A DNA stretch of 64,000 nt. It comes from Diplonema japonicum. Lineage: Eukaryota; Protista; Euglenozoa: Diplonemea. This document shows positions 29,911-55,467 of this stretch, piece by piece (the stretch's first letter is position 1; every line of letters starts with the position of its first letter). The notes beneath the pieces were generated by a model that was not told the origin of the DNA, did no database searches, and worked only from the letters and a program-made list of their open reading frames with translations. The translations under genes were made by a program, and so were the position numbers. The stretch lies in NCBI GenBank assembly GCA_964019335.1, contig OZ025706.1, forward strand, positions 310,001-374,000. The letters run 5' to 3'.

Positions 29911-31519
29911 TCACCCAACAATGATAGGATGGAAAACCAATGTGTTATTGCTGAGCACGAGAACCAGCTCGGGAAGCAGGTCTGCGGGGATGGCACGGAG
30001 ATCAGGCGTACGAGTAGAGTGTCCGACTAGAGCGTTGCAGTCAGGACACATCACAGAAGTCCCCCGTTCAGGGCTCGCCCAGCTAGGAAGCTCAAGAATA
30101 TCGGGGGAGAGAAAATTGAGCGGCGACGCCAGCACCCGACTGCACCGGCAAAACAACGCTTTTAAAGAAGTAGTAGCAGCTCCTTGCGGCGCTTTTTTAC
30201 AATAAGTTGCCGGATCGATAGGAATAGAAGTATCGCTCAGCTGGTAGGGCACCGTGTCTAACATGTTAAACTCAGCCTGGAACAAGTCGAATAGATCTCC
30301 TGTTGCAGGACCGTCGCCAGACGAAAGCATGGATTCTAAAAAACGCAACTGTCTGCAGAAGCTTGAGTTCGGCTGCACGACCGGACGGGATTTTTTCACT
30401 TCGCCGTACGCCTCGGACAAGGATAAATTTCTTTTTATCATGCTGTGGGCAACGACCATGAAGGCTGACCTGCTCATTCCTTTTTCACAATGTACTAGGC
30501 ATCCCCCTTCACCATTTCCTTCAATAAAATCAGCGCCAAGTTCTGCGTGTGACAGGAGGTCCGTGAACAGGACGTCGTCAACACTCAGAATTTTATAGTT
30601 GAATTCTGTCGGGTGTTTAGGAGACAGGTCACACCCCACACTTAGGACCCTCGTCACTTCACAGGTTTGTAGTTTCTTCACAGCGTTGCTCCCTTTATAT
30701 GACGAGATGAACACGTTGTTGGATACTTGACACACGTCTTGCTCCTTTTTTTTTTTTTTTTTTTGTTACAAATATTTATTTTTCAAAAAATGATTTTATA
30801 AACTATATGCAACTTGTGCCGAGCAAAAAACTTTCGCAGCTTTTTAAAAACCTTTTTTGCTCGTGTGAAAAAAGTAAAATGCCGCCGAAGACTGCCAAAG
30901 CGGGTGGAGAGAGGGTTGATCACCCACCTCCCCGCCTCCGTGCCAGACGCCAGGCCGGAGTGAGGCTACCCCTAAGAGAACCAGGGTCGACCGGCTCGGC
31001 CGTTCAAAGGGCCATCTCCGAGCTGCTCCCCACGGTTAGGGACCGGGTGGAGAGTTCGCACCTTGGGTCGGGACATCGGCTGGAACTCTCACCGCCGACC
31101 GAGCTGATCGAGGGCCAAGCGCCGAGGGTACGACTGGGGTCAACCTCCCCGGAATCCGCGACGGAAAGCGCAGACGCCTAGCCTCGCAGTCTTCCGCGGA
31201 CTCGGAGGGTTTTCGCGACGAGCCAAGCGCCGACGACTCACCACAGGACAACCCCGACACTCAGGCTCCCCCACCGCTATGGGGTCTGCAAGCCTTAGAG
31301 CCGTCTAAGTGGGCGTGGTTAGAGCCGTCTAAGTGGGCGTGGTTAGAGCCGGGCGAACGCAACAACAAAGACATATAGTCATAAAGAATTATTTTTTTTT
31401 TTGTTGTAAAAAAAAAGAAATACCTCTTCCTTCATACTCTCACTGATGTAATTATCTTCCAACATCACTCCCTTATGTTGTCTTTTTGGTGCCCATGCTT
31501 TTGGCTTCCCTTCCGCCAT
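29911..31519 (-). CDS. Dual-specificity protein phosphatase; exon 1 31519-31424, intron 30745-31423, exon 2 30744-29911
   Basis: HCEKGMSRS catalytic loop and QPNSSFCRQL. Exon 1 (MAEGKPK...SMKEE) splices in phase 0 via GTATTT..AAAG to EQDVCQV. Confidence 0.85.
30765..31391 (+). mobile_element. Family A element (627 bp) in the DUSP intron; cargo is the 5' end of an unknown (gag-like?) ORF
   Basis: Left terminus of ~73 bp shared with 52886; right terminus agtcataaagaatta shared with 53499-53513. Internal ORF MPPKTAKAGGER.. from 30879. Flanked on both sides by poly(T). Confidence 0.85.
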
Positions 31520-31779
31520 TTTTTGTTTGTTTGTTTGTTTGTTTGTTTGTTTTTTTTTTTTGTTTTGTTTGGATTACCTCCTTCTGATCTTTCTCTTTTT
31601 TTTTTATAGGTCCTTTTTGTTTTGGTTTGGTCTTTTTTTTTTTTCTTCCTTTCTTTTTTTTTTGACGTTTGAAAAAGAAAGAAATAACATACAAAAAAAA
31701 AAGAAAGGATGCAAAAAAAAGGGGGGGGGGGACTGAACACAGGATACAGGTTTTTTTAAAACTCCGCAGTAACATAAAA

Positions 31780-31893
31780 GAGGAACTGGCCGTTGTTTGT
31801 ACGTGCCGGGTAAAACCTGGAGAAGTTTGTCAACCCGAAACACGTTGCCAACGTTCCCCTTTTTGTTTAGACAAGTCAAAGACTCGTTTTTGC
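31780..31893. repeat. Family B dispersed repeat (~113 bp), copy 1
   Basis: Near-identical to 62159-62271. Confidence 0.85.
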
Positions 31894-32122
31894 AAAAAAA
31901 AGGGGGGGGGGACGTGCAGAGGAAAAAATAGGATTCCCTCATTCATTTTTTTTTTCTTTCTTTCTTTTTCATCAAATTTTGAGACTCCAGGCAAAGAAAA
32001 AAAAAATGAAGAGGGTGGTTTCCCCCCCTCTTTTTTCTAAACTTTTTTTTTTGTTTTTTTTTTTTTTTTTACACAGGGGATTAAAAAATGGGGGAAGGGG
32101 GGAACAAACTTTCTACATATTC

Positions 32123-32151
<29 letters not shown>

Positions 32152-32184
<33 letters not shown>
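32152..32184. repeat. (AAT)11 microsatellite
   Basis: Directly visible tandem AAT units following a poly(A) run. Confidence 0.9.
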
Positions 32185-32187
<3 letters not shown>

Positions 32188-32235
32188 GTAAAGCGAAAGA
32201 ATTCTGGAGAGAATAATGCCGGAGTGACAGACTCC

Positions 32236-32299
<64 letters not shown>

Positions 32300-32358
32300 G
32301 GACATTTTTTCTCTTCCGGATTTCTTTTTTTGTTTTGTTTTACAGCAATTCCCCTTTT

Positions 32359-34370
32359 TCAATATTCGATACCGCTTTTAGAAGATCTAGGTTTTTCAAG
32401 GAAGTTCTCACGGAAATTATCGTCGAGGGCGAAACTGGTTCTTGCACGGGAGGGCTTGGAGGCGAGTAGGAGGAGGGGGTCGGTCGTGGTGACCTGCCTC
32501 CGAAGGGTGGAGTTCTGCTGCATGAGCCGTGACCGCTCTCGTTCGCTCCTCTCTAGCTCAAGCTTGCATTGGTGCCAACATATTTTTGCATTGTGGCATT
32601 CCGCCACCAGCTGACTATCCCTGTCCATGAGCCGTGTGCTGTTGTCGGTTGTGATTCGTAGTTCACGCATCAAGTCCTCTTGTTTTTCTCTTACGCGCGA
32701 GTTTTCGTCTTCAAGTAGAACCTTTTCTTCTTTCAGGTTCCTCACGTCCATCTCGCTTTCATAGACAGAATCCTTCAACATCTGCACCTCCTTCACATGA
32801 CTGTCACGGTCCTTCCTCCTTGCCATGCTTTCTTCTTCGAGTTTAGCTGACAATTCTGTATACGCAGATTCCCTGGATCGTATCTCCTCCCTGCGACGTT
32901 TGGCTTCATTTTCCATGCCAGACTCAACCATTTCCTTGTTTTCCTTTAAAACGACCAGATCGTACTCCAGGGTGTCAATGCGTTTCTTGTGGTCTCGATG
33001 GGCCTTTGCGAGATCAGTGGATGCTTGTGATTCGATAGCTTCCTTTTCCCGTTCCAGGTTGGCGATTTCGGTGTTAAGAGCGGTGATCTTGTCTTGGTAC
33101 TGAGTGAGGCGGGCGTATCGTTCTTGAGAGGTTTTTTCAGCCCGCTCGCATTTTGTCACTAGGCTGGTCATTTCTGCTTTTTGGGTGTTCAGTTGCAGCT
33201 CCAGCTCCCTGATTGTGGTGTTCTGCTGGAAGATATGTTTTTCAGAGTCCAAACGAACTCTGTCAAGGTCATCGCGGAGCTTAGCATCGGCTGTTTGATT
33301 TGCCTGTTAAGTGTGCTGCGTGACACAATTGGTGTCATACCTGCTGCACTGCAAGAGGCACCACATCGATTTGCTTGTTGAAGTCGCTTCTGATCTGCGA
33401 TTTTGTTTCTAATGCTTGCATCTCTTTTTCTCTCAGCTGTGAAGAAAAAAAAAATTTTTTTTGGGGGGGAAGAGGATCGTACCGTCAGCTCGCTTTCGTA
33501 CTCCGCTCTCTCCCTCGCCTGTTCCGCGATCACCCAGTTGAGCTGCTTTGTCAGTTCTTGTCTTTGAATCTCCTGGAACTGCAGCGATTTCTGGTATGCC
33601 ACCTCCGCTCCCTGATCCTTGTCCATCAAACGGGAGTTCAGGGTGTCCATTTGTTTCTGAAGAAGCTCGTTTTTTCTGCGAGATTCGTCGCTGTAGGTAG
33701 GTGTTTATATATTAATTTCGTCGGATGCATACTAGTTTTTTCGCAGGAGGGTGACCTCTTCTTGGTTTTTCTTGATGAGGTCGATCTTTCCCTTGTCGTG
33801 CTCGGATGTGAGCGAGTGGGTGTGGGACGTGAGCTTGTTGCGGAGCTGTTCGATTTTGCTGAGGTACTCCTCCTCGAGCTCCTCCCACTCACGTTTTTCT
33901 GCGAGGACAACACGGTGCTCCTTTCGTTCCTTACGCAGCTCGATCTCAAGCGACTCCGTTCTATTCTGCAACATGGTGGCCTCTGCACGCAGGGCCTCTA
34001 TCCTCTCATCGCTCAACGAGTTCCTCCTCCCAGACATCTGCGGTGCGGTGTGCGAGCTAAACTCCCTCATTCTTGCGTTCTCTTCATTCGCATCGAGCAA
34101 CGCCTTCCGAAGCTCGTTCTCCGTCGTAAAGTCACTAGGGATCGCTACTTCGCTGCCGAGACTTTGCCTCGCCCTCAGCAGCTCCTCCTCGCTCGGTTCC
34201 CTCCCCAACCTTTGCCTCTCTCTGTCTTGTATCAAATAATGCGCCAGCTTGCTCCATGTGTCGAGCCTCTCTTGCTGCTGCCTCAGCTCCCTCATCAGAT
34301 CGCTGCTCTGAGAATCCGCGACAGGGTTCGACCATGGCCCCGTGTGCGTGGCCTCAGGTATGTGTGACAT
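32359..34370 (-). CDS. Long coiled-coil protein; introns 33691-33732, 33437-33482, 33304-33340
   Basis: Heptad E/K/R/L-rich ORF segments joined in frame by three GTA..CAG introns. Confidence 0.75.
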
Positions 34371-34478
34371 ACCCTTCTCCTTCTCCTCCCCTCACCTGCG
34401 GGTGTTGTGTATGACAACCAGAAAAAAAAACTGAAAATTCAACTAAAACTGTACAAAAAAAAATTTTTTTTTTCTTCT

Positions 34479-35168
34479 TCATCTAGGTGTACCCGGTAGA
34501 GAATAACTCTGCGGGTATGGTACGGGCGTTGAGGTATGTGGAGATGGTACAGTGTCCGGGGTGCGGGGTGTCCTTGGGTGGAGTTTTTTGGGACCCTGTG
34601 TTTTGGAATGGACCAAAGAGGAGATGGTAGCTGTGAAGGTTGGGGGTGACCACTTACAAGAACAGGTCGGTGGGGTGGTGCTGCAGGCGTGCTGCGTGAC
34701 GTATGCCAGTTTGGAAGATAGCTGGCCGAGACGCTCATCACGAGCCTCGAGAAGAGTTTTAGACTCATGGAGGTCTTTGGCGACGGTCCCGAGGCTTCGA
34801 GAGATTTTTTCACTGTACTCTTCAGATCTGCTTAGTTGTTCCTGAAGCTGGTCTGCAAGCTCTTGCAACTGTTTGATGTAAACAGTTTTTTCCTCGCACT
34901 CCGGCACGCATTGCCTCACGTTTTCTTGCTTTTTTGGCTTTTCCTGCACAGGTATGGGTCGCTTCCCTCTTCGCCCCAGCATGAACCCCACGCAAAACAC
35001 CGCAACCCCGACCCCCACCATCCCCACCTTCTCTTCCCAGCTTACTTCGGGGCAGGTTTGTTTCTCTTTCTCTTCTTCTACCAAGCTTTCCGAGATCAGG
35101 AAAGCCATGTAGCACAACAACAACAACATGATCAGTCCTGCAGAAACAGTCATGTAGGGCGTAGACAT
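34479..35168 (-). CDS. Hypothetical membrane protein (2 TM) with coiled coil
   Basis: Two hydrophobic segments followed by a heptad region. Confidence 0.6.
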   Translation of the reverse strand: MSTPYMTVSAGLIMLLLLCYMAFLISESLVEEEKEKQTCPEVSWEEKVGMVGVGVAVFCVGFMLGRRGKRPIPVQEKPKKQENVRQCVPECEEKTVYIKQLQELADQLQEQLSRSEEYSEKISRSLGTVAKDLHESKTLLEARDERLGQLSSKLAYVTQHACSTTPPTCSCKWSPPTFTATISSLVHSKTQGPKKLHPRTPRTPDTVPSPHTSTPVPYPQSYSLPGTPR

Positions 35169-35351
35169 TTTCTTTTCTTTTATTTTTTTTTTTTAAATTA
35201 TTATTCCATTCCGGTTGGTTTTGTCTGTCGCATCCCTTCTGTGTAAATAAATTTAGATAGACCCCTCCCCCCGAAATTAGAAATAGGAAAAAAATAAAAA
35301 AAAATTACATTATTTGCTCTACAAAAAAAGAAAAAAAAAGAAGAAGAAATT

Positions 35352-36416
35352 CTACATTTCAATTTCAGCACGCTGGCGTTGCATCTTAGCCCACGGGGTG
35401 GGGATGGGTGCGGCTCGTGGGCGGGTTCTTGTGTAGGTGATAATTTTCTCCTTGGAGTGAGTGGATTGACACAGCGCTTGGAGATCTTTGCTGGCACTGG
35501 CCACATCAGGGTCGAGGCCTGTAATGGTGATGATGTGCGATCCCCAGAAGTCTCCCTGCTCAGATTCGATTTGGACGCTGTACTTAGCTCGAAGCGCTTG
35601 AAACCCGTACCCCTGGACGGTGACTGCACCACGCAGGGCGCCTGTCGGGAGCGCAAAATATTTTGTGACGATTTTCGCCGATTTTTTCGGTTTGCTCAGC
35701 TCGGCGAAGTATTTCTCCCGTTCAAGCCGAGGAGCTGAGGGGACGTTGCTGTTTTTCTCCTTAATGCTCAGCTGCAGGGCTTTAATCTCTTCTTCTTGCT
35801 CAGCGACGACTAACCGGAGTTCTGCGTACTCTTGCTCCACAGCTTGTCGGACGTACAAGGCCTGTCCGGACTTGATACACCTTTCCTTCAACATGTTTAT
35901 GTGCAGCTTATCTTTCTCTATCAGTTGCAGGATCTCTTCTTCAAGACGAACAGTTTCAGAGTTTAGTTTCGCGAGTGTTTCGGGGTACTTCTTGTTCTTT
36001 CGTTTCAGTTTCAACAGTGTTGCTTCTGCCTCGTCTCGCAGTTTTCTTTCTGGTATGGCTGGCGTCACGTCTAGCAGTGTCTGGTTCCTCTCCAGTTCCA
36101 GTGCGTGTGTCTCGAGCATGATGCAGGAGAGTTCAGCCTGCGAGCCTTTCACGTTGTCGCGGGTTGTCTTCATTGTCTCTATCGCAGATCTTGTCTCGTC
36201 CTTGCACGTGAGGATCGCGCTCTCGAGGTCGGCCGCCTTTTCTCTGGTGCGTTTGAACTCTTTTAGAATCTGCATGGCCTGTTCCTTGGCGCTCTTCCCC
36301 GCGTCGCCATTCGCCTCAAGGATCCGCTTATCCAATTCGTCATCTAACGTGTTCAAGAGGTTTTCAAATCGACCCGCCTCGACCAGGACCTCTTCGGGTG
36401 TTGCTGTGGACGACAT
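35352..36416 (-). CDS. Coiled-coil protein with a C-terminal degenerate KH-like domain
   Basis: Heptad repeats, then FALPTGALRGAVTVQGYGFQALRAKYSVQI..ITITG, which has KH-like spacing but no canonical GxxG. Confidence 0.6.
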   Translation of the reverse strand: MSSTATPEEVLVEAGRFENLLNTLDDELDKRILEANGDAGKSAKEQAMQILKEFKRTREKAADLESAILTCKDETRSAIETMKTTRDNVKGSQAELSCIMLETHALELERNQTLLDVTPAIPERKLRDEAEATLLKLKRKNKKYPETLAKLNSETVRLEEEILQLIEKDKLHINMLKERCIKSGQALYVRQAVEQEYAELRLVVAEQEEEIKALQLSIKEKNSNVPSAPRLEREKYFAELSKPKKSAKIVTKYFALPTGALRGAVTVQGYGFQALRAKYSVQIESEQGDFWGSHIITITGLDPDVASASKDLQALCQSTHSKEKIITYTRTRPRAAPIPTPWAKMQRQRAEIEM

Positions 36417-36546
36417 TTCTTTTTTTTTTTTTTTTTTTCCCACAGCTTTATTTTTTTTTTACATAAAAAACTTATTGTATCTCTACCTTTAAAGAAACAA
36501 AAAAATCGATATATGCATTCCCTGTGTACGGAAGCACGGAGGGACG

Positions 36547-37368
36547 TTAAATGCAATGAGGAGCCACAACACCTGGGAAGTCGGTGATGATGGAAGTCGA
36601 TCGCCCCGCTGCTCGCAGGGCCTCCTCCCTCGAGTTCACAACCCATGCCGCGACCAGAACTGTCCCCCTTAGATCCGTTCCCCGACACCCCTCGACCACC
36701 GTTTTACTCGGCATCACCATTGAGTACTTCGAGGGGGCCGCACCTGCTGAGCAGTACCGAGACTCGTCCCCACCATAAGATGCTTCCTTCACAGGGAGGG
36801 AAAGTTTTATATTACCATTGGAGACGTATGATGCGTACGGTGTTATCAAAGCAAGGTACGGGAATCTCTCTTGATAAGAATCGATAATGTCTATGATGTG
36901 TGTAAGGTGCGGTGGGGATGCGAGGCGGCCCTTCGGCTCCAGCGTGACTTGCAGTGCTTTCAAGGTTGCAAGTAAGTCGAGAATTCGAAAAAGCTTCTTT
37001 TCTTCGATTTCTCCCAGCTCCTCTGAAGTATAGTTTTGAACCTCCTTCTCCAGTTTTAACTCTTTTTTTAAATCCACTGGGTGGCCCACCACCATTACGC
37101 TGTCTGTAGTGATACTGACATCCAAGTCAAAGCACCGCACTCCCACAGTCTGTGAGAGGTGTGCAATCCCTTCACCTGTGTCTTTCCTTACCCCTTTATG
37201 GCTGCACACGAGGGGGGAATCCTCGTCCCCTTTCACTACCCGGCAGGTGGTTGGTGCGGCGGTCGCATTGTGTTTTTTACTCACCATCGGTGTGCTCCTC
37301 GATTTTCGACGCAAGACCAAGCAACCCGCGCAAAGGACAGCTATAAAAAAAAGGCTGTTTTTTTTCAT
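36547..37368 (-). CDS. Glycerophosphodiester phosphodiesterase-like protein with signal anchor
   Basis: VCSHKG, FDLDVSITTDSVMVVGH, TLEPK, AAWVVN and IITDFP match GDPD TIM-barrel motifs. Confidence 0.75.
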   Translation of the reverse strand: MKKNSLFFIAVLCAGCLVLRRKSRSTPMVSKKHNATAAPTTCRVVKGDEDSPLVCSHKGVRKDTGEGIAHLSQTVGVRCFDLDVSITTDSVMVVGHPVDLKKELKLEKEVQNYTSEELGEIEEKKLFRILDLLATLKALQVTLEPKGRLASPPHLTHIIDIIDSYQERFPYLALITPYASYVSNGNIKLSLPVKEASYGGDESRYCSAGAAPSKYSMVMPSKTVVEGCRGTDLRGTVLVAAWVVNSREEALRAAGRSTSIITDFPGVVAPHCI

Positions 37369-37762
37369 TGGTTCCCCCCCCCTCCTGGGTGAGTTGGTTG
37401 ATCGGAAAGAAAAGAAAAAAAAAAAAAAAAAAAAAAAAGAGACATTTAAGGGTACCAAAAAAAAAAGAGAGCAGAAATGGTGGCAATTCGTTAGCAGAAA
37501 TGCCGGCAATTCGTTATTGTATGCGATGCAAATAATCTTCTTTTTATTCTAGGAGGGAAAAAAAAAAGAAGAAGAAGAGAGGGAAAAAAAAAAGAGAGAG
37601 AATACCCGCCGTGTCACACAAACAAATTTTGCTCATTCTTTCTTGTTCTTCTTCTTTGTTTCTCTCTCTCTCGCTCTTTTTTTTTTTTTTTTTTTTTTGA
37701 TTCAGCGCTCTTTGTAAAAAGAATGCAAAAAATTGGAAGGAAAAAAAAAAAGAAAAAAAAAA

Positions 37763-38100
37763 CTCGATCTATTTTCGCGGTGCGCTGGTTGGTGCCCACC
37801 GTGGACTGGGGATCCTACACGTGCCTGTCACCATTCTGCGGTTGCATCCTGGTGCCGGCCGTCGGGGTTTGCCTGTCCGTCATGGACGGCATCTGCGCTA
37901 AGAACATCGGTCGCAGTCCCTCCAAATAGGGAGCTGTTTGGGTTGACGAGAACAAGGGTCTCTTGTCGTAGCCATGCATCGCTGGTGCGCCCAGGTTTCT
38001 CAGGGAGTGTACTCTGGTCATCCTTCCTGCCTGAAAAAAAAAAAAAAAGGCCTGTTTGTTCGTGCCGGGGTAAAAACTTGGAGAAGGTTTGTAAAACCCA
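37763..38100 (-). mobile_element. Composite remnant: family-B-like end, poly(T)-CAG, then an ORF C-terminus paralogous to 13183
   Basis: 38049-38100 resembles half of family B. Translation HSLRNLGAPAMHGYDKRPLFSSTQTAPYL..PQNGDRHV* aligns with ORF 13183..13533. Confidence 0.65.
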
Positions 38101-38182
38101 CAAAAAAACAAAACAAAAACAAAAACAAAAACAAAACAAACCCCCCCCCGGCGTCATTTTATTTCCCCCCCCCCCCCTCTCC

Positions 38183-44364: not shown

Positions 44365-44395
<31 letters not shown>

Positions 44396-44612: not shown

Positions 44613-45936
44613 CTACCTGCCCCGGTCATCAGGGGAGCACATATGAGGAAAGCCGATATAAGTAGCGGGAGTTGTGGAAGCAGCAGGTACAACGGTTTGC
44701 TGTTCAAGACTTAACCTTTCTAAGTGGTCCCTAACCTCTTGGCGGCGGGGGCTGGTGAGGTGGTCGTCCTCACCATAGCTAAGCCAGCGGACGCTTCGAT
44801 GGAGGTGCGCTATCAACTGCAATTTTTTTTTTTTTTTTTTTTTCCCCGCACACCTCCGGTTCCAAAACCGGTTCCAGAACCTCCCTCAGCTGCACGATCA
44901 ACTGAAAAATCTCAGAATTTGCCCCGCTCTTCCGTTCAACCTCCCACAGCGAAGGCAGGCTGAACAAGTCGTGCCTCAAAAGATTCAACAAATTATCCGG
45001 AAGCCGCTGTGCGACACCTTGCTCCCTTTGCTTCTCCAAATGTCTGCGTATCAACGTTGTCAAAGAAGTATACAAATTGCGCAGATCAGCCCTTTGAGCA
45101 GCCCCAAACGGATGCGACATTATAACATGCAGCCTAGCCCGGATAATCCGAAAATCAAGATCCAAGTCTTGCAAGCGTCCTTCCGCCACCGTTTCCTTCA
45201 AGGCGGTTGAGGACTGCGCCTCGAACTGTGCTTCCAATTCTTGCTTCAGCTCGGGATTCGGTGCAAGCCTCACAAGCGTTGAGACATCTGGAAGAACCCT
45301 CTCATTGGGCATCAGGACACACGTACATGACACAACGTCTCCGGGCTTCAAACTCATAACTACCGCGTTTCCTACCAAACCACCTCCCAACCTCATGAAC
45401 AGTAACGATGGGAATTTCACGCTTAGTGATATTCTTGCGGGTACGAGTGTTATAACACTAGGAAGCCCTGCTCTTGGGAACACCTCGTGCACTATACACG
45501 GAACGTTTTCATATGTTCTTTTCGGTAATGGAGGTTCATGCTGCCCGGTGTTGATGGGCACGCCATGGTGTTGGCCTTTACATCCCTTGCCTTTCCATCG
45601 TCCTTTGCCTTTACCACGCTGTGAGTAGGTGTTGTGGCGGTAGGGTTGGTCAGTGGGGTACCCGTAGTTGTGATGTTGGTAATGGTGGTGGTGGTGGTGG
45701 TGGTGATGATGGTGTTGGTGTTCGTACCCATAGTTGTGAGATAGATTTGAGGGATGTGCTGTTGTTGTTGGTGTGTAAGCTTGGTAAGCGTCGGGTTGGG
45801 CTTGCATCCAGTCGAGGTGCTGGTGGCCGTGTTGGGCATCTCTCAGAGCAGGAGATGTGTAGGAGGGTGGAGGGGTGTTGCCCGTGTTCCGTTGATGCCT
45901 CGGCGCGGGGTACTGGTCCCACCCGCCGCCTGACAT
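44613..45936 (-). CDS. Hypothetical protein with poly-His/low-complexity N-terminus; intron 44817-44853
   Basis: Long ORF; a GTGTGC..TTGCAG intron continues the frame into LIAHLHRSVRW. Confidence 0.65.
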
Positions 45937-46124
45937 TTACCGGCACAGAGAGAGGGATCCCTCCCTCCCTCCCCCCTCCCCACTCCTCTTCTTTTCTTGC
46001 GTTATTGTATTTTATGGTGGTTTTTTTTTTTTTTTTTTTTTTTCCTTCAGTTTTTTTTTTTTTTGTTCCCCCGTTCCTCCTCCCTCCCTCTCCCGCGTGT
46101 AAACTGAATGTGTGTTTTTTTTTT

Positions 46125-46156
<32 letters not shown>

Positions 46157-46184
46157 TGTTGTAGAATGGGGGGGGAAAGGAACA

Positions 46185-46502
46185 TCAGGGAATATACTGT
46201 GTTTTTTTCGCTGGTGCGGGTTGTGCCCATCGATAGCAATGCCAAGCCAACCCGGCGCACACGCCTCCAAGAGGCAGCCGTAGCAGCCACGGGTTGTGCC
46301 ACCACCCCTTTTTCAAAACCACGTTTTCGCACGCCATTAATTTGTGCATCTCGTAAGAGGCTGTGTACTTGCAATGGCACGCTAGTTCCCCCAGTTTGCA
46401 GCCCACCACATCGCGGTGGTGGAGTATTTTGTACTGGGTTTTATGTATTTTAGGATCGGTAACATCTTCGTCTACCTTGGGCAACCGCTTCTGCCATGTC
46501 AT
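46185..46502 (-). CDS. Small hypothetical protein (105 aa)
   Basis: Homopolymer-free block on the array strand, with the ATG just after an A-rich tract as in neighbouring genes; no recognised domain. Confidence 0.45.
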   Translation of the reverse strand: MTWQKRLPKVDEDVTDPKIHKTQYKILHHRDVVGCKLGELACHCKYTASYEMHKLMACENVVLKKGWWHNPWLLRLPLGGVCAGLAWHCYRWAQPAPAKKTQYIP

Positions 46503-46751
46503 ATTTTTTTTCTCTCTCTTTTCTTTTTATTATAAATCTATCTCCCCCCCTCTCCTCTCCCTCTCCTTTTCCTCTGCCGGAGTTTTGTTGTGTTGTGCCA
46601 AGGGGGGGGGGGGGGGGGGGGGAATATAAGAGAGAGAAAATAAAAATAAAAAAGAAAGGAAAAAGAGATAACATTCTAAAAAAAAAAAAAAAGAAAAAAA
46701 AAGAGATCTATACAAAATAATTATTTTTTTTATGACAATCCCCCTCCCTCT

Positions 46752-48590
46752 TCAAGGCGACATTATGAGATCTCTGTGCTGTGCAACGATATTCTCGGTT
46801 TGGCGAATTTGAAGCTCCAGCTTGTGTATGGTTGCCTTGTAGTTGAGGATCTCCTGGTCTTTCTTGTGGATGGTGGTCATGACCCGCTTCTGAACGGATT
46901 CTAGTTCCTCGCCGTGCGCGTCGCGGAGGTCTTCAATGTGCTCCTCTGCTTTAGTTTCCTGGTGGGCAAGGCGAAGACGAAGTTTTTCATTCTCAGCCTC
47001 CGCCTTAGCTGTGGAAGAGCAGGCTTCCTCCATCCTTGTTTGGTACTGTGCTGCCAGGAGCACTTCTGCAGATTTAAGCCGTGAAGCAAGCTCTTCATCG
47101 AAGTGAACCTGCTGTTCAAACATTCTTTCTTTTTCACGTTTGACTTTTTTCATCTCGTTTGTAAGCATCTCGTCCTTCTCTTCAAGGACCAGTTTCATCT
47201 GTTTGTTCTGTTCTTCCAAACACCCGGTTTTCGACACTAACCTGTCTTTTTCCCTTTCAAGCGTTTCAATTTTTTCGCGGTTTCTCCTTTCAACGTGCCG
47301 GACTTCTTCGGCGTTCTTCATGGCTTCGTCCTCCAGCCTGTTGATGATCGCGGTGATGTCGGCGGTTTTTTCGTTTGCTAGCTTTTCGCGAATTGTTTTT
47401 TCGCGTCTGTCGAGTTCGTCTTGAAGCTCGCGTTTCATGTCCTCACGGATGACGAGTAGCTCGTGGTGTTTCATCTCCTCCATGCGTGTTCTTGCCTCGT
47501 GGAGTTGCTTGTCGGTTTCCCTTCGAAGTGCGTCTTTTTCGTCGGTTAAGGCATCACGCAGAGCTCTGCGTGCATCGTCTTCCTTTTCACGAGATGTTCG
47601 AAGCTCGGACTCCATCGCAGCAAGGGTCGCCCTGTGTCTGGAACGCTCTTCTTCAAAACATCTTTCCACGATTTCCTTTTCGCGTTGCGCGGATCGGTGG
47701 GTTTCTTCCAGTTTGGCCTCAAGACGCGAGGCTTGTTCCGTCATTTTCTGATGCAACATTTCACGCATCTTAGCAATGGCGTCTTCACAATCTGTTGCAT
47801 TACGTGCACCGGTGGCAAGGAGCTCCCTGTCTTTATCCGCGATAATCTGTTCTTTCCTTCTAAGATCTGCTTGGTGCTCCTCGTCAATTCTACGTATTTC
47901 TGCCTTGTGCTTTGAGAGGAGCATCGCAATATCCGGTTCAAGTGCTTTAACAGCGGCGGACTTGATTTTTTTCGTCTCGTTTGCGATCCATGTTTCTCGT
48001 TTCTTTCTCTCTGAAACTGTGATTTGGGATTTTACGTTGGAGACCTCGCGGAGGTGGGCTTGGGCGGTTTTTTCTTGTTCGGCGGAGATTCGGGTTTCAA
48101 GGGTTGTTTTGTCGGTGGATAGATCCTCGCATTTCTTTGTGAGTTTTTCCTTGTCGCTGATGAGCTGGTTGATTAGCTGCACATTTCTCTGTATGACAGT
48201 CTCGAGGTCGAGCTTTTGCATTTCTACGTGTTTTTCAGCGGCTTGCTTGACGTGGGTTACTCGTTCTTCTTCGCGGTGTTTCAGAGTTTCTATCTTTGTT
48301 AATAAGAGTTTAATTGTTTTTTCCTTGTCTTCGGATTCCCGTTGCAGTTTGTCGATTTTGGCTTTTACGCCTGTGAAGACGGATTCTGCTTCGGTGCTTA
48401 CCTCGCTTTCTGCTGCGAGGCTTCTGTCTAGTGATGCCAGAGCAGATTGTGTCAAATGTTGATTTGCAACACACGGGGTGTCCATCTGGATGACGCTTGT
48501 AGTCGAAACCGCATCCACCCCGTCCAGGAAGGTCAGAATGTTGTTGTACTTCAAATCGTTCTTCCGACGTCTTGTTCTCGAGGGGTCCAT
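46752..48590 (-). CDS. CEP131: Centrosomal/basal-body coiled-coil protein, CEP131 (AZI1)-like
   Basis: WIANETKKIKSAAVKALEPDIAMLLSKHKAEIRRI and IQRNVQLINQLISDKEKLTKKCE resemble conserved CEP131 blocks. Confidence 0.75.
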   Translation of the reverse strand: MDPSRTRRRKNDLKYNNILTFLDGVDAVSTTSVIQMDTPCVANQHLTQSALASLDRSLAAESEVSTEAESVFTGVKAKIDKLQRESEDKEKTIKLLLTKIETLKHREEERVTHVKQAAEKHVEMQKLDLETVIQRNVQLINQLISDKEKLTKKCEDLSTDKTTLETRISAEQEKTAQAHLREVSNVKSQITVSERKKRETWIANETKKIKSAAVKALEPDIAMLLSKHKAEIRRIDEEHQADLRRKEQIIADKDRELLATGARNATDCEDAIAKMREMLHQKMTEQASRLEAKLEETHRSAQREKEIVERCFEEERSRHRATLAAMESELRTSREKEDDARRALRDALTDEKDALRRETDKQLHEARTRMEEMKHHELLVIREDMKRELQDELDRREKTIREKLANEKTADITAIINRLEDEAMKNAEEVRHVERRNREKIETLEREKDRLVSKTGCLEEQNKQMKLVLEEKDEMLTNEMKKVKREKERMFEQQVHFDEELASRLKSAEVLLAAQYQTRMEEACSSTAKAEAENEKLRLRLAHQETKAEEHIEDLRDAHGEELESVQKRVMTTIHKKDQEILNYKATIHKLELQIRQTENIVAQHRDLIMSP

Positions 48591-48744
48591 GGTTTCTTTT
48601 CTTTTTTTTTTTTTTTGGAGGGGGGACTTTTTTTTAAGTTAAAAAAAAAGGAGAAGAAGAAGAGAAATATAAATAAAAAAAAAGGATCCTTTCCGCCAGA
48701 TTCCTTTTTTTTTTTTTTTTTTTTTTTCCTTCTCCCACCAGTTT

Positions 48745-48825
48745 TTACACCACGAATAAGGTGTAGTTCAATAAGATGCTTTTAATAAGCGCGGTGGCTG
48801 GGTCCTAAGTGGGGTTTTATTTTCC

Positions 48826-48870
<45 letters not shown>

Positions 48871-48992
48871 ACAAACCTCCAGGTACTCCTTGTCAACGAA
48901 GAAAAAGACAGGCATCTCGATCAACTCGTTCGGTTTGATTCGCTGCTCCTCGAAGCAGAAACACTGGATCTTGTTGAAATACTGCGAGGCCT

Positions 48993-49028
<36 letters not shown>

Positions 49029-49600
49029 CCCTTTAATACCTCGGCAGGCGCCACGTTGTAGGTGGATATTCCTATCAATGTTTTTGCAGTTTTATTGTAC
49101 ACGTTAAAAAAGGCTAAGGCAGGTTCACCTATAAGAACGTCCATCTGGGTTTGTAAAGGGACAAAGAGGACGGGTGATTCCTTTTGGCCAACGGCACCGC
49201 GGAAAATTACGTTGATCACTGAAGAGATGTTGGGCCTGTTCGACTCCCCGTCGAAAATATTTTCTACGTGTTTGTTGACACCCCCACCTATTTGGGGCGA
49301 GGTGGTGCAGTACATTTTGTACAATGGGACAGCGAGCATTGTGCCCCCTAATGAGAAGAAGCAGATGGTGACAATGCCCGCCGCCAGTTTTCTCATTTCT
49401 TCCTTTGACCCGCTCTCCTCTGGGTCGCGGTCTTTTTCACCCATTTCGAAAAGTTTCTTCCCCTCCTTCATCCTTTCCTCCGCTTCTGTCCTTACCCTCA
49501 GTTTGACCCCGCTCTGTTTCCTCAACTCGGACTTGTCACTTTGGCACCTCATCTGCACCAGGGTTCTTGCCACATTCCGGCGTAAGTGGAGGCCCAACAT
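48745..49600 (-). CDS. COX11: Cytochrome c oxidase copper chaperone COX11; introns 48991-49039, 48805-48876
   Basis: [24 protein letters not shown]; after splicing [21 protein letters not shown] and LNYTLF. Confidence 0.93.
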
Positions 49601-49643
49601 TTTTTTTGTCCCCCCTCTCCCTTCTTTCCCCTCCCGTCTCGCT

Positions 49644-49676
<33 letters not shown>

Positions 49677-49718
49677 CCCGGGTGGGGAGCGAGGGAAGAA
49701 AAAAAAGAGAAAAAAAAA

Positions 49719-50044
49719 TGGGGCTTTGATTGCAACACTAGGTGGCGTTAAGCGTGCAACGAAGCACGAAATACCTACTTGATTACAGGGGGCGCTCCTC
49801 GGCCGAGCAGTAGCTTCTTCTGCGTTCCGCGTCGTGTCCTTAATGCATGCGGTGTGCTCAACCCTAGCCGGGGCGTCCCGGGTAACCAAGATTCTGCGCT
49901 CGTGCAGTTTGCTGCCTGTTCGTCACCCTGAGCATCTGCGATACGTTCTTCCACTCGGGCGCTACCGGTGATGACCGACGAGGAGGTCAACAGCGAACAA
50001 CACATCTGATGTACTTCTTATATTTCCATGTTATCCCCACCACC
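49719..50044. mobile_element. Family C dispersed repeat, copy 2 (326 bp)
   Basis: Near-identical to 28205-28528; lies 119 bp upstream of the COX11 ATG. Confidence 0.85.
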
Positions 50045-51143
50045 CAAAAAAAAAAAGATAATAAAAAACAAGAATTTTTTTTGAAAAACTTTTTTTTTTT
50101 TCCTTTTTTTTATTTAGGGGATGAGTGGTGGGATGAAAAAAAAAAACAAAGAACCGATGCGGGGTTTGTTGTGTTTCTCCTTTTTTTTTTTTCCCCCTTC
50201 TTTATTAAACAGGACCGACAATAAGTTTCCCCTGGAGACATTGGGAGTTGGGTTAAGGAGGGGAAATGGTTGGGGGTGGTTAAGTATTGTAAAGAAGAAA
50301 AGAAAAAGAAGAATGGGGGGGGGGGGGGGGGGGGAACAATTAAAAAAAGGAAAGGAAGGAAGGGTTTTTTTTTTCTCTCTTTTCTTTCATTGTTCATTCC
50401 TTCTCAAAGCTGCCGTCCCCCCCCCCCCCATTTTGTTTTTTCCGTTTGTCTCTTAAATCTAAACATCACCACTATTCTCTGCTCTAAGTGGGCAGAGAGA
50501 AAAAAAAGTACAAAAAAAAATAATATAAAAAAAATGAACAGTGTTAAAAGAATAAGTTATTTCTTTCTTTTTTTTTGACAACAAATGAAAAAAAGGGGGG
50601 GGGGGGAACACACACAAGTCGGTTAGGCCCTCCCTTACACACAGGAAGAGGGAAAGAAAAATGAACAACATTCACAAACATGGGTAACCCCCTCTTTCGT
50701 CCTTGCCCCCATGGCTTCCAATGGCTACATATATAGTTTCATAAAGTGTTTAAAAAAGAAAGAAAAAAAGATAACTTCCCCTTTTGTTTTTTTCCTCAAT
50801 TATTTTCTTCTTGTTACTTCCCAAAAGAAGGCTGAAACAGTTTCTTTCTTCGTTACCTGTTCCTTCTCTTCCCCCCTGTGAATGGAAAAAGAAAAAAAAA
50901 AAAAGAGGGGACATAAAATATTTTAAAGGGGGGAATAACAAAGACAGAACACCCTTCTTCCCAAGAGGGCTCGAACCGTTGATTCCTCTACTTTCTTTTT
51001 TTTTTTTTTTTTTTTTTTCCCTTTTTTTTTTTTAAAATTTAAAAAAAAAATTGTTCTTCGCCTTACTTCTCTTTTTCTTCCTTTTTTTAGAAGGGAGGTA
51101 GCCACGCAGATAACAGAAACCGGGTTTTTCCAATCGTTCAAAA

Positions 51144-51175
<32 letters not shown>

Positions 51176-51827
51176 AAAGCCTATTAAAAAAAGACCTAGA
51201 AAAAAAGAAGAAGAAAAATAGAGGGTTTGATTGTTGTACTTTTGCACCAGCCCTCCACTTTTTTTTTCTCGTCAAGTAAAATAAGGGGGGGATGCTTAGA
51301 ATTATGAGAAGCAGAGTAAAACAAAAGAAACTGTTTAGTTTTATTCCCCCTCTTCCCGTCCTTTTTTGCTCACCTATGCTTGTATCTAGCAAAGGTTAAC
51401 CCAAAGGGTGCGAGAAAAAGATAGAGAAAAAATAAAAAATAAATAAGAAAGAGGAGCACATAGGGGGGGAAAGAAAAAAAATTAGATACAGTACAAGTGA
51501 AAAAAAAAGAGGGGTTAAAAAAAAAAAACTGTAAATAAGAAAAAGAAGAAGAAAGGTACATAAGGGTCAACAAGAAAAAAAAAAAAAAAAAGAAAAAAAA
51601 AAACTACAAAATATTTTGGAGTGACTAGCGGAGGTAAGAAAGATGGGAAAGTGAAAGAAAAAAAATCTTGCAAACTTTTTTCGGTTTGGCTCACTGCCCT
51701 ACTGTTTTGTAATTTTCTTTTTAAAAAAAATAAAGGGGGAAGAAAATCACTATGGGGGAGGGGGGGGGGAGGATGTTAGTAACGGACCCACCACCAGAAC
51801 AATCGAGAAAAGTATTCCCTCAAACTC

Positions 51828-51858
<31 letters not shown>

Positions 51859-52584
51859 TAAGCCCACAGGCTAATAACCGAAAAAAGTCAATTTCCTAAA
51901 AAAAAAAAAAAAAAAAAAAAAATGGCAGCATTTAAAGCTCTATAGATTTTTTTTTTTTTTTTTCATTTTTTTTTTAATGTCATATACTTATAACATGTGG
52001 GTTTAGTGGTTAAAATACTTTCTTCCCCTTATTTTGTGGTCTTTCCCTTTCTTCTCAAAAAAGAAAAAAAAAACCCCCATCCTCCCCGAGCCCGTGATTA
52101 CTCCAAATAACAACAGATGGCACCGGAGGTGGGGGAGGGGCACTCATTAGAAATGAGCTTTTCTTTCTTTTGTTTCTCTTGATTTTCTGTTTTCCGAATT
52201 TCTTTCTTACAGCTATACCAAATCACATTTGGATAGGGGCCTTCGGGGGGAGGGGTACATTGTTGTTGCTTTTTTTTTTTTTTTTTTTTTTTTAAATTCA
52301 GCTCCAAAGAACTTTTTTTTAATGTTTTTTTTATGGTTTTTTTTTTTTTTTTTTTTTTTTTTATACAAGACATGGGGTGGGGGACTTTTAGGGCGGGACA
52401 TGACAATGAAAAAAAAAAAGAAGAAAAAAAAATGACAATAAAAAAAAAAAAAAAAAAGAGGTACAGAGTGAAAAGATGGGGCAAAAAAAAGAATCATAAT
52501 GATGTTACTAAACAGGGAATTTAAAAAAAGAAAAGAAAAAAATATGGGGGGGGCCTGGTCTTGTCTCTCACCCTCACACTCTCC

Positions 52585-55467
52585 TCAATCATCAAGATCG
52601 CCACCAAAAACTAAAGCAGGGTGCATCATCTATTTTTTTATTTTTCTACTTTTAAAACCAGCAAAACACACCTTTTGGGCAGGGGAATTGTTTCCGGACG
52701 AGTGTCCAGATGCTCCCAGCCCATTACTGGCGGAGTCATCCGCCCTGTCGTTGGCAGCAGAAGCCGAGGGCGGGGAAACAAATGGCCGTGCATTGGCATT
52801 GAGCCTGAAGGCTCCTGAAGTGCTTTCACTCCTGCTGGGGGTCCGGGCAGGCGATATCTTTTTTTTTTTTTTTTTTTTTTTTTTTGTTACAAATGTTTAT
52901 CTTTCAAAAAAATGATTTTATAAACTATATGCAACTTGTGCCGAGCAAAAAACTTTCGCTTGCGATCTGGCTGGAGGGGTCAGTTCAGCACCGTCGTGAT
53001 GGAGTTGGGCGCCAGTTTCCTCCGCAAAGCCACGACGAGACCGTGGCCGTTCCCCCAACTACAGTTGCTGACATGAGGCGTGCGCTGGCGGTGATGGCCA
53101 ACAACGTCTGGAGAACCCAACCTGACGAATTACCTGAGAGGGTGGTGTGGACTGACGCTTCGTCGACTGCCTGGGCAGGGGTCATGCTGGATGAAGGTGT
53201 CGTGAAGCACGTCACGCAGGGAGTTCTGCGGACAGTGGGAAGCACGTCACATCTTCCTGAAGGAACTAGCGGCAGCCCGGGAAAGAGCTTTTATGGCCCT
53301 CTGTGGGGGGTCCCGCTGCAAGGTATCGCTGATGGTCGACAACCTGCCTGCTGTGTACGCGATTCGGAAGTGGAAGGGGCTGTCATCAAGCTTCATGGGA
53401 AATAAGATAATTGCTGACATATACACTCTTGTAGAAGAGCGTCAGGCATATCTCCACGTCCAGTGGGAGTTCCACACACGAGCAGAAGGCAGACAAAAAG
53501 TCATAAAGAATTATTTTTTTTTTCCTTCTTCCCTCTCCATCTTCCTGCCATACCGCTTGCTTAGAAGGGGTGCTAACCTTCATCTCCCCAATTGAGTTAT
53601 TCAGATTACCATCAGACGGACACGGGCTAGGAAGCGACATATTCTGCAAAAGAGGCGATGTTTGGATCTGTATGATTATAATTTTTCCCCCCCCTCATTT
53701 TCATTTCTTACCGGAAGGAAGGCGGCAGGAGGCGTCATATTCAAAGGAGTAGTCTCAACGGGAATATCAGCATGCGACGAAGGGGTACCACGATCCTGTT
53801 TTTTTTTTTTTTTTTTTTTTCTCCCATACCCCACGCAGCCACTGTCCATCAGGCGTGACACCAAGGGCATCGCCTCCGCGTGGGAATGTTTTTCTTGGCG
53901 GTGTAGCTACGGCACTGACATGGTCAAAGGTCCTGGTACGCAGCCGTGATTCAATACGTTTCCCATGCGGTGTGTTCTTGATAAGATGCATCAGAGGTCT
54001 AATAGCCATTTGCAAGCTGTAAAACTGAGATTGGTTGCAACACCCAAGCGCTGTTTGAATCACGTAGTTCGCGTATTGATCCTGAAGCAGCAAGGGGAGC
54101 TTCGTCCTGTCGCAGAGCTCATCAATGATCAACTGCCTCACGTCCTCCGGGCTGATTTTGAGACACTTCTCGATCACATTAGACGCGAACTTGTTCATAC
54201 TTAGCCCAGGGATGTTGCCCAAGAACTGCCGGATCACCTTCACGTTGATGAAATCCAAGTCCATTTCCAAGATATACTGCAGAAGGTAGTTCCCGAACGG
54301 ATCCTGCACAAGACAGAGGCCATTGTTGATAACCTCATAGACAAGCTGCATCTTTTGGGAATCGGACCCGAACTCTATACACCTCTGCAACACACAGCAC
54401 CCGTGTCTATGAGTTCCAAACTCAACAACACGCTGTAACAATGTGTCGTGGATGGGTTGGTTCACCTCAGAGGGGAACGACTGTAGAACCTGTTGAACAA
54501 TGTGGTTCCCGTTCAGATCCTTGATAAGCTGTGGGATGTTCTGAGTCAGCACCACCATCAGCATGTCGACCTGCTCCTTCGACGCCACCTGTTCAATGAT
54601 CTTCTGTACAACACGTGTCCCGTGCATGTTCATGGAGATGTGCTGCATCTGCATGCCGAGCTTCTCGACTAACAGTTTTTTCTGATGTTCGCTTGCCCTG
54701 TAGAACAGCCCAGGGATCAACGGAGATGTCACGGGGTCTGTGAACACATCCGCAGGTTCCGCCAGTAAGATATCCACCACAGTCCCGATGTGCGGCTCAG
54801 TTCCCTCGTCGGACACCTTCTGCAGCCATTGCATTGCGGACTGGTCTCTGACGAACTCGGTGAGGCGCATTGTTTGCAGATGCTTCAAAAGAACCTCGAC
54901 AGAGACAGGCTGTGATGTGGCGACAGATGGCGGCGCGGGGCTGCTTGCCAGGTTCCATCCCACAGACGCCATACGCATTGCCTGATCCAATGACAGGACC
55001 TGCCCATGTTGCGGCATCGGCATGGAATGCGTTGGCGGTGTTGGTGTCGGGACCAATGGTGGCGGCGATGAAGTGGCGACACGGGCTTGGATTGTAGGTG
55101 TGCCCGGCCTCCTGTCAACATCACCATCAACGAGTTCCTCTTCCGCGTTGTTGAGCAAGTCCAACTCTTTCTGTAGAGCCTCCTTCTGCTGTCTGATATA
55201 CTTCAGTTTGTCATGCTGTGCGCTCCCTCCTGCCCCCCCATTGCCCACCGGTGCAGGTGATGGTGTCGCTGACGGCGTAGGCGGACCGCGGTTCAACAAT
55301 GCTGGCGTGCCCATTCCACCCATCATCCCCTCCCCAGGTGGAAGCAGCTCCGGGGGTGCTCCCACCGTGCCTCCCTTTTCCATATTATCCATACCCACCA
55401 ACGGTGGCGGGGCACCAAGACCTGCCGCACTGCCTAGCAGCGCATGCAAATCCGCCGTGTTGCTCAT
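52585..55467 (-). CDS. Pumilio/PUF RNA-binding protein; introns 53796-53829, 53668-53711, 52858-53553, 52630-52671
   Basis: PUF repeats (HGTRVVQK, NGNHIVQQ, HGCCVLQR, FGNYLLQY, FASNVIEK, YANYVIQT). Four phase-0 GT-AG introns extend the C-terminus; the last intron is the least certain. Confidence 0.88.
52886..53513 (+). mobile_element. Family A element (628 bp) in the PUF intron; cargo is a frameshifted DIRS/VIPER-type RNase H fragment
   Basis: VWTDASSTAWAG, a frameshift at ~53220, then HIFLKELAAA, LMVDNLPAVYAIRK and LHVQW. Termini shared with 30765-31391; poly(T) on both sides. Confidence 0.88.

Follow-up and report, generated by a model that had tools for sequence, protein, structure and literature searches.

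A probable VIPER/TATE-type tyrosine-recombinase retrotransposon of a diplonemid, with copies in poly(T) runs and mini-introns

Three short repeats in a 64,000-nt stretch of the Diplonema japonicum genome (contig OZ025706.1, positions 310,001 to 374,000; hereafter the window) belong to a family, here called family A, which is very probably a diplonemid retrotransposon of the VIPER/TATE type, encoding a tyrosine recombinase (YR); it lands almost exclusively in T-runs, and copies of it are spliced out of introns. The kinship with the VIPER and TATE elements of kinetoplastids is argued from architecture and from host phylogeny. A preliminary description of the window had proposed non-autonomous derivatives of a YR retroelement that targets poly(dA:dT), and this inference was largely right and is supported by the results given here.

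Window copies and their host introns

The three copies lie at the positions where they had been described (Table 1), and all of them belong to solo or internally deleted classes that are unable to move on their own. The shared left end is real and is longer than the ~73 bp originally claimed: this end, A, measures 111 nt in the parent element, and copy C retains its first 74 nt. The right end, B, is 34 nt long (GCGAACAACAAA followed by GACATATAGTCATAAAGAATTA), of which copy C retains the last ~15-19 nt only. The interiors are indeed unrelated to each other, but what had been taken for different cargo consists of remnants of the parent and includes no foreign DNA. Copy B corresponds to positions 1-575 of the parent, which hold the full 111-nt A and then the 5' part of the gag-like ORF1 (ATG at 30889); a 30-bp tandem duplication follows at 31331-31360, and B closes the copy at 31361-31391. 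Copy C corresponds to parent 2679-2716, 3149-3169 and 3201-3656, the last interval being a 461-bp RNase H piece from the end of ORF3; 74 nt of A and two short internal pieces come before it, and a truncated B follows. That copies B and C are nearly equal in length (627 and 628 bp) seems to be a coincidence, since no common size class exists there among 41 measured copies. The 156-bp solo carries a ~23-bp insertion, and its surroundings are AT-rich and apparently intergenic.

Table 1. Family A copies in the window, their flanking T tracts and the host gene features around them.
Feature	Positions	Strand	Remarks
Old, diverged solo A-B unit, SIRE-like	815..970	-	156 bp; 74-95% identity to parent ends
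Phosphatase exon 2	29911..30744	-	DSPc domain PF00782, 66.5 bits; HCxxGxxR motif; without ATG of its own
GT-AG intron, dual-specificity phosphatase gene	30745..31423	-	679 nt; 52 nt without element
T19 tract directly upstream of copy B	30746..30764	+	On minus strand, A-run before intron 3' AG
Copy B, internally deleted element	30765..31391	+	95.5% identity to a long copy
T11 tract immediately after copy B	31392..31402	+	Read from sequence
Phosphatase exon 1, coding part (MLEDNYISESMKEE)	31424..31465	-	In frame with exon 2; covered by spliced contigs
Pumilio-gene exon downstream of copy C intron	52588..52857	-	Orthologue alignment
GT-AG intron, Pumilio-family gene	52858..53553	-	696 nt; 68 nt without element; orthologue alignment
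T27 tract directly upstream of copy C	52859..52885	+	On minus strand, A-run before intron 3' AG
Copy C, multiply deleted element	52886..53513	+	93% identity
T10 tract directly downstream of copy C	53514..53523	+	Read from sequence
Pumilio-gene exon upstream of copy C intron	53554..53643	-	Orthologue alignment

Both loaded copies are antisense within introns that are tiny without the element, as the preliminary description had it. Around copy B, splicing at exactly the borders it had given is borne out by RNA contigs from three studies (X2, X5 and X10), in which ~30744 is joined to ~31424 and the intron is removed; contigs of X9 appear, judged by their lengths, to continue into this intron from both exons. 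The RNA contigs also have 36 extra letters beyond 31512, for which a spliced leader was considered and rejected, there being no AG at that place; this reading is further undercut by the next stretch, an (ACAA)n/A-run repeat that was probably masked in read mapping. The intron predicted around copy C has the bounds that had been expected, as fixed by alignment to diplonemid Pumilio orthologues, since the alignment of orthologue P0178 stops at 53554 and that of D. papillatum P0177 begins at 52857 (E 1.7e-12).

Where other eukaryotes have a polypyrimidine tract, the mini-introns of this host carry poly(A). The window introns match the published D. japonicum pattern, with a GTATG 5' site and an A-rich tract before the 3' AG (PMC12621601). 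In line with a Diplonema host, the best matches are to D. papillatum. Because the A-run precedes the 3' AG, the insertion of the two copies into mini-introns is antisense and the element is removed together with the intron. The idea of introns as safe landing sites thus holds for these two copies, but in a crude test the flanks of other insertions give no sign of intron enrichment: the signal of an intron 3' end, a C before the T-run, was seen by eye in ~11 of 30, where about one third is expected.

Parent element and genomic derivatives

The full-length gag/YR/RT-RNase H parent that we sought is represented by the longest genomic copies (3.8-3.9 kb), which encode a gag-like ORF, a YR and an RT/RNase H. 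In these copies the tyrosine recombinase matches PF00589 with 33.7 bits (cut-off 27.1) and the reverse transcriptase (RT) matches PF00078 with 30.0 bits (cut-off 29.6). The catalytic stretches RCSDV...HSIRGG...MRYL, bearing the R...HxxR...Y residues, are present in the YR domain, which is 43-45% identical to its counterpart in D. papillatum polyproteins. The RNase H (RH) residues D-E-D-D (D300/E337/D362/D411) are invariant across the aligned homologues, and RT motif C reads W-[IV]-D-N. Overlapping frames in the longest copy comprise ORF1 (120-1028), the YR ORF (527-1987) and the RT/RH frame (1953-3707), which gives the order gag-like ORF, YR, RT/RH. ORF1, for which neither a Pfam match nor a CCHC box was found, is gag-like by its position and basic tail only. 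ORF3 ends ~100 nt before B, with no further domain match and no methyltransferase. In both of the longest copies read in detail (L061 and L062) the pol region is broken by a stop or a frame change, and the family may no longer be active.

The repeats are split and direct, arranged as A1-[ORFs]-B1-TTTTT-A2-B2, with a unit of 3.8 kb before the TTTTT; A1 and A2 (111 nt) are 100% identical and B1 and B2 (34 nt) 97% identical. A 20-nt core of A occurs 394 times in the 62.5-Mb genome (at most 2 mismatches) and 0 times in a reversed control, so that its recurrence is not due to chance, and the termini pair elsewhere in the genome in hundreds of copies, spread over many contigs and lying in T-runs. 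The ~400 copies consist for the most part of A-B solos of 133 bp and of A-x-B copies that have lost internal sequence. Units of 116-136 bp account for 19 of the 41 measured copies, many more being seen in the genome, and only ~10 copies retain the B-T5-A junction.

Poly(T) runs as insertion sites

Target statistics were drawn from whole-genome exact-pattern counts, which take in the less diverged half of the copies only, and from 37 independent flanks. The genome contains 202 exact left ends, 10 of which are internal GAATTA-TTTTT-GTTAC junctions; 139 of the 192 outer ones (72%) directly follow at least 9 T, against a background of 1.35% of window positions. The enrichment of poly(A/T) flanks that had been predicted is therefore present and amounts to ~50-fold (binomial p ~1e-213). 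The 37 independent sites have a median T-run of 13 to the left of the element and 6 to its right, and 26 of them have at least 5 T on the right. Insertions share one orientation: a long T-run precedes A, and ~5 T or more come after B, matching the T5 of the internal B-A junction. As a target, poly(T) at large is used, the A-runs of tiny introns included. No target duplication other than T was seen, and since both flanks are T-runs a duplication of T is indistinguishable from the target itself.

To explain these observations, we propose that reverse transcription would yield circular or end-joined DNA, in which the B-T5-A junction would be the crossover site of the recombinase. The YR would then exchange strands with any genomic T-run, homopolymer homology setting both the insertion site and the orientation while no target duplication is made, and deleted copies could arise by template switching onto a 12-nt block at the start of B. 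We give about even chances to the stronger proposal that, through the T5 crossover region, every poly(T) tract of ~9 nt or more serves as an oriented attachment site, coupling the spread of the element to intron architecture. If this is true, antisense intronic insertions would be spliced out and tolerated while enlarging introns of 40-70 nt tenfold, and family A would be the first among YR retrotransposons to show a target rule that is set by sequence and can be read off, with ~190 natural insertion sites behind it. A simple symmetric crossover would not predict the asymmetry of the flanks, at least 9 T being found in 72% of cases at the left versus ~33% at the right, and a search for clear inverted-repeat recombinase arms around the T5 junction gave none, the best being a weak 6-of-7 match. 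Neither an empty site nor a circle-junction read came to light.

The T-runs might instead be made by the element, for example as a homopolymer tail copied in LINE-like target-primed reverse transcription, and many non-LTR elements do have homopolymer flanks. This is very improbable, for the long run stands at the 5' end of the coding strand, no endonuclease domain was matched in the domain search of long copies, which encode a recombinase instead, and the derivatives retain both termini and are missing internal sequence rather than being 5'-truncated. In addition, host DNA contains 259 A/T runs of at least 9 per 64 kb (~4 per kb) regardless of elements, and both host introns need an A-run without the element, an A-rich tract being a published trait of D. 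japonicum (PMC12621601). Improbable too, if slightly less so, is that the A2-B2 tail is a separate solo inserted in the T-run behind a long copy, which would leave the element with simple A...B ends. Solos do enter T-runs, and each copy leaves a T-run at its right, but at 10 places in the genome the internal spacer reads TTTTT without deviation, a single TTTCT being the only variant, while the T-runs of the outer flanks range in length from 1 to 41; moreover, the tail occurs in at least 8 of 10 long copies and in few short ones, and A1 equals A2 within a copy.

A possibility to be taken more seriously, though we lean against it, concerns the origin of the short copies and is compatible with the main explanation: solos and deleted copies could be products of in-place decay of full-length insertions, by homologous recombination between A1 and A2, recombinase-mediated excision between T-runs or random deletion, rather than mobilised non-autonomous elements. 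Identical 111-nt A1 and A2 would support the formation of solos in the manner of solo LTRs, the several separate deletions of copy C look like decay, and for SIRE, too, the questions of origin and mobility are undecided (PMC6681497). On the other hand, solos outnumber copies with an internal B-T5-A junction by ~18 to 1, and the 3' deletion breakpoint falls at parent 3775-3778, the start of B, in 8 of ~20 derivatives whose 5' breakpoints differ, a pattern that fits a template switch during replication better than random deletion.

Relationship to known elements

Named homologues come from Diplonema papillatum, from the diplonemid Flectonema neradi and from Papus ankaliazontas, presumably the free-living prokinetoplastid described in PMC7859406. 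The homologue matches with organism names included no VIPER/TATE sequence from a named trypanosomatid, and further cluster look-ups yielded environmental contigs only. A whole-length homologue search with the YR ORF gave no match, and a protein atlas search returned generic integrase and RT neighbours only. Sister RT families at 27-31% identity exist in the genome. TATE-like ORFs have been mentioned in passing for D. papillatum (PMC10161547).

Membership in the LINEs is rejected on the endonuclease search, the retention of both ends in derivatives and the long homopolymer at the 5' side of the coding strand. Like family A, Ngaro elements have split direct repeats (A1-[ORFs]-B1A2B2) and a YR, and lack a methyltransferase (PMC8547959, PMC7192593). 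In the figure legends of these two papers the YR of Ngaro follows RT/RH, whereas here, in every long copy as in the D. papillatum relative P0020, it precedes RT, which excludes membership; the Ngaro of Cafeteria also prefers endogenous virophages, not homopolymers. DIRS-1-like elements are YR retroelements as well, but the inverted terminal repeats, internal complementary region and methyltransferase of DIRS-1 are all absent here; a full copy of family A contains 0 inverted repeats of at least 18 nt, its repeats being direct, and DIRS-1-like membership is rejected too.

The logic of a junction that defines the target may nevertheless be common to both. As related in PMC7192593, an earlier comparison proposed for DIRS that the target is set by a short sequence at the junction, which comes to flank the insertion on both sides, although the junction proposed for DIRS-1 is a trinucleotide and not a homopolymer. 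The target choice of tyrosine-recombinase retrotransposons has hardly been studied, the specificity of the DIRS-1 recombinase having received no experimental investigation (PMC7192593). Family A offers ~190 insertion sites that obey one rule (a T-run, a fixed orientation and T5 at the internal junction), which makes the idea directly testable.

The closest resemblance is to VIPER and TATE, which combine gag, YR and RT/RH with A1...B1A2B2 repeats and of which SIRE represents A2 plus B2 (PMC6681497, PMC12278014). The VIPER of Trypanosoma cruzi and other kinetoplastids shares with family A the order of overlapping gag-like, YR and RT/RH ORFs, the split direct repeats, a short and abundant form that amounts to A2+B2, and a euglenozoan host (PMC6681497, PMC12278014). 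In both, target duplications are not recognisable, though here a duplication of T would be hidden by the flanking T-runs. TATE, from Leishmania braziliensis and other trypanosomatids, is built like VIPER and falls into one clade with it in RT trees (PMC6681497), but it is named as telomere-associated, whereas family A is dispersed. Family A further differs from VIPER in its diplonemid host, its smaller 3.8-kb unit, an ORF1 without CCHC box and the W-[IV]-D-N form of RT motif C. The T5 junction and strong poly(T) targeting are unreported in the VIPER/TATE literature cited here, and since T-runs are missing from environmental relatives, the preference for T does not extend to the family as a whole. 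VIPER/TATE-type elements are thus extended from kinetoplastids to diplonemids with a full anatomy, including a transposon able to live in A-run mini-introns without breaking genes, which for copy B has RNA support. The kind of element is already known, and family A is new as a variant of the trypanosome VIPER/SIRE kind.

Parental element and window copies

The three Family A copies that the preliminary description had recognised in the window by their shared termini are all present, opening with GTTACAAAT and finishing with AGTCATAAAGAATTA, and a window-wide search revealed no copy beyond these three. With up to two mismatches allowed, the 62.5-Mb assembly of Diplonema japonicum (132 contigs) contains 394 matches to a 20-nt left-end core, which is absent from the reversed control of the same genome. 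Genome searches with the loaded copies B and C as queries yielded long elements that unite the two interiors, 2.6 kb apart in one unit. The parent that the preliminary description had proposed to look for was thereby found, with ORF1, a tyrosine recombinase (YR) and a reverse transcriptase/RNase H (RT/RNase H) lying between a left end A and a right end B.

ORF1 in the longest copy read (locus L061) has neither a Pfam match nor a CCHC box. The YR scores 33.7 bits against PF00589 (cut-off 27.1) and contains the residues RCSDV...HSIRGG...MRYL, the RT scores 30.0 bits against PF00078 (cut-off 29.6), and the D/E/D/D residues of RNase H are invariant across homologues. The first and second A of the element (A1 and A2) are 100% identical and the corresponding B1 and B2 97%, the second A and B overlapping in a common 12-nt block; no inverted repeats of at least 18 nt occur in the L061 element. 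A spliced leader might be added to element transcripts at positions 57-58 of A, its earliest AG, close behind the T-run. In one copy, at locus L063, a single ORF runs from YR into the beginning of RT; in other copies the two are in different frames with an overlap of ~35 nt. In an alignment of the RT/RNase H ORF, the sequence of RT motif C is W-[IV]-D-N, not Y-x-D-D, in Family A and all close diplonemid-type relatives, and YLDD is found only in the most distant homologue.

Copy B corresponds to parental positions 1-575, followed by a 30-bp tandem duplication and B, and copy C is composed of the first 74 nt of A, parental positions 2679-2716, 3149-3169 and 3201-3656 (the end of RNase H), and a truncated B. 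Since these copies map onto parental pieces and the third, diverged copy is a solo, their apparent 'cargo' is debris of long parental elements, in agreement with the earlier view that they derive from a YR retroelement.

Locations of the Family A copies, host-gene features, parental parts and sister loci
Feature	Location	Strand	Remarks
Copy B	window 30765-31391	+	flanks T19 and T11
Copy C	window 52886-53513	+	flanks T27 and T10
Diverged 156-bp copy	window 815-970	-	old solo
Dual-specificity phosphatase ORF	window 29911-30744	-	PF00782, 66.5 bits
Upstream 14-codon exon	window 31465-31424	-	in frame with phosphatase ORF
Intron around copy B	window 30745-31423		
(ACAA)n microsatellite and A-run	window 31513-31600	-	directly upstream of phosphatase mRNA contigs
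Predicted intron around copy C	window 52858-53553		
Pumilio mini-intron, 68 nt	window 53644-53711	-	G-run and A-run
Pumilio mini-intron, 34 nt	window 53796-53829	-	GTATGGGAG + A22 + CAG
A	L061		111 nt
ORF1	L061		303 codons, arginine-rich tail
YR ORF	L061		overlaps ORF1; recombinase in C-terminal part
Overlap of YR ORF with ORF1	L061 element coordinates 527-1028		~500 nt, other frame
Third frame	L061		RT and RNase H
Tail	L061		B (34 nt), TTTTT, second A and B
12-nt block GCGAACAACAAA, end of A / start of B	L061:1100-1111, 4775-4786, 4913-4924		
YR and start of RT	L063:2169-4454	-	single 761-codon ORF
RT/RNase H ORF	L062:3378-4664		used for RT motif C
Sister RT/RNase H loci	C11:363931-365136, C52:77410-78615, C73:465533-466738, C63:470062-471279, C82:414661-415857		

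Poly(T) target and proposed integration

All independent left flanks at the loci examined are T-rich. In counts based on exact matches of a left-end 20-mer and a right-end 22-mer, the whole genome contains 202 left ends, of which 10 belong to internal GAATTA-TTTTT-GTTAC junctions, and 139 (72% of the 192 outer ends) directly follow at least nine T, compared with only 1.35% of window positions, on either strand, that are preceded by T9 (binomial p ~1e-213). The poly(dA:dT) targeting suggested in the preliminary description is thus upheld at the genome scale. Right ends number 165, and 51 of them, about one third of the outer ones, are followed by at least nine T. At 37 independent sites, uninterrupted T-runs have a median length of 13 on the left side and 6 on the right. 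The right-hand run reaches at least five T at 26 of the 37 sites, exactly five being the most frequent length among these with six sites, and at seven sites only TT precedes an interruption; the shorter right runs are mostly interrupted T-runs, for example TTATTATTTT. Because most right runs have at least five T, and because T5 joins B1 to A2 in the long copies, the repeating unit behaves as A...B + T5. Orientation is fixed, with a T-run rather than an A-run before A, and insertion occurs preferentially in the 3' portion of a T-run. Homopolymers are extremely dense in the window, which holds 135 T-runs and 124 A-runs of at least 9 nt (~4 per kb), 81 of which measure at least 15 nt, and 34 G/C runs of at least 9 nt.

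Strand exchange by tyrosine recombinases takes place within a short stretch over which the two partners must match. We propose that the B-T5-A junction would recombine with any T-run, so that the insertion would be flanked by T's on either side without a recognisable duplication, its orientation being set by T versus A. Around the T5 junction, a search for recombinase-binding arms gave at most a weak inverted match of 6 out of 7. For DIRS elements, an earlier comparison proposed that a short junction sequence defines the target and flanks the insertion on both sides (related in PMC7192593); the Family A data fit the same logic, but with a homopolymer.

Host introns of copies B and C

The phosphatase ORF beside copy B is without its own ATG. 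Contigs from sequencing runs X2, X5 and X10, representing three studies, follow the exon as far as position ~30744 and resume at position ~31424, so that a 679-nt GT-AG intron including copy B is removed, as the preliminary description had expected; owing to a single C on either side, the join is ambiguous by one base. The exon contig of run X9 ends at about the first base of copy B, as suggested by record lengths, and a second X9 contig runs unspliced through 31423; we take X9 to be DNA or unspliced RNA, and X2, X5 and X10 to be RNA. The phosphatase mRNA contigs also include a short upstream ORF (ATGGGCACC...TAA).

Upstream of copy C, a 566-codon ORF encodes a Pumilio protein with its best match in Diplonema papillatum (57% identity). 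In a local tblastn search, one orthologue alignment ends at 53554 and the next block starts at 52857 (E 1.7e-12), which coincides exactly with the limits of the intron predicted around copy C. Two additional mini-introns of the Pumilio gene agree with the orthologue alignment and with the A-rich tract published for introns of D. japonicum. For this species, the published median intron length is 41 nt, the 5' site is GTATG, and A predominates at the expected position of the polypyrimidine tract (PMC12621601); the introns seen here fit that description. Both copies are antisense in their introns, and the left T-run of each is the intron's A-run directly before the 3' AG. The other flanks displayed no intron signal, a C preceding the T-run in about 11 of 30 in a crude count by eye.

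Deleted copies, relatives and known systems

Nearly half of the distinct measured copies (19 of 41) are A-B solos of 116-136 bp, and the remaining ones range from 175 to 3808 bp. Ten long copies examined measure 2.0 to 3.8 kb from A to B1, and internal deletions distinguish them from one another; on close reading, each of the two longest has its pol region disrupted by a stop or a change of frame. In 8 of ~20 deleted copies, which have differing 5' breakpoints, the 3' breakpoint falls on B's first base (parent 3775-3778), and the solos have the same join, made via the 12-nt block. This block may be a template-switch point, and template switching during reverse transcription would produce deleted copies and solos alike. 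For the solos, recombination of A1 with A2 in place is still a competing explanation, and the same rival stands for SIRE (PMC6681497).

RT/RNase H relatives with 44-50% identity are found among the annotated Gag-Pol polyproteins of D. papillatum, where a YR domain likewise precedes the RT, and 2444 cluster representatives match at E ≤0.001. Further relatives occur in Flectonema neradi, a diplonemid, and in Papus ankaliazontas. The latter presumably corresponds to the free-living prokinetoplastid in PMC7859406. Environmental relatives (L071-L112) consist of dozens of 4.3-4.7-kb metagenome contigs, mostly from a few JGI samples, with 35-39% identity; their first 70-180 nt recur in direct orientation at the other end, which fits circular forms or split direct repeats. 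These contigs contain no T-runs, and therefore T-targeting looks like a trait of Family A's lineage. Sister RT/RNase H families in the D. japonicum genome are 27-31% identical to Family A.

TATE-like ORFs and intronic transposons receive only passing mention in the genome paper of D. papillatum (PMC10161547), and the Family A element is undescribed in the D. japonicum papers PMC13598402 and PMC12621601. Our results support the interpretation of Family A as a diplonemid retroelement of the VIPER/TATE type that targets homopolymers. A LINE-type interpretation fails for Family A: its domain matches include a recombinase and no endonuclease, and its derivatives are deleted internally while retaining both ends. 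The retroelement class, SIRE-like solos and A-rich introns were already known; Family A provides a concrete, testable target rule for this poorly understood class. VIPER and TATE carry split direct repeats, A1...B1A2B2, together with gag, YR and RT/RH, and SIRE consists of A2+B2 (PMC6681497, PMC12278014); Family A has the same repeat pattern and gene set, and its A-B solos are SIRE-like.
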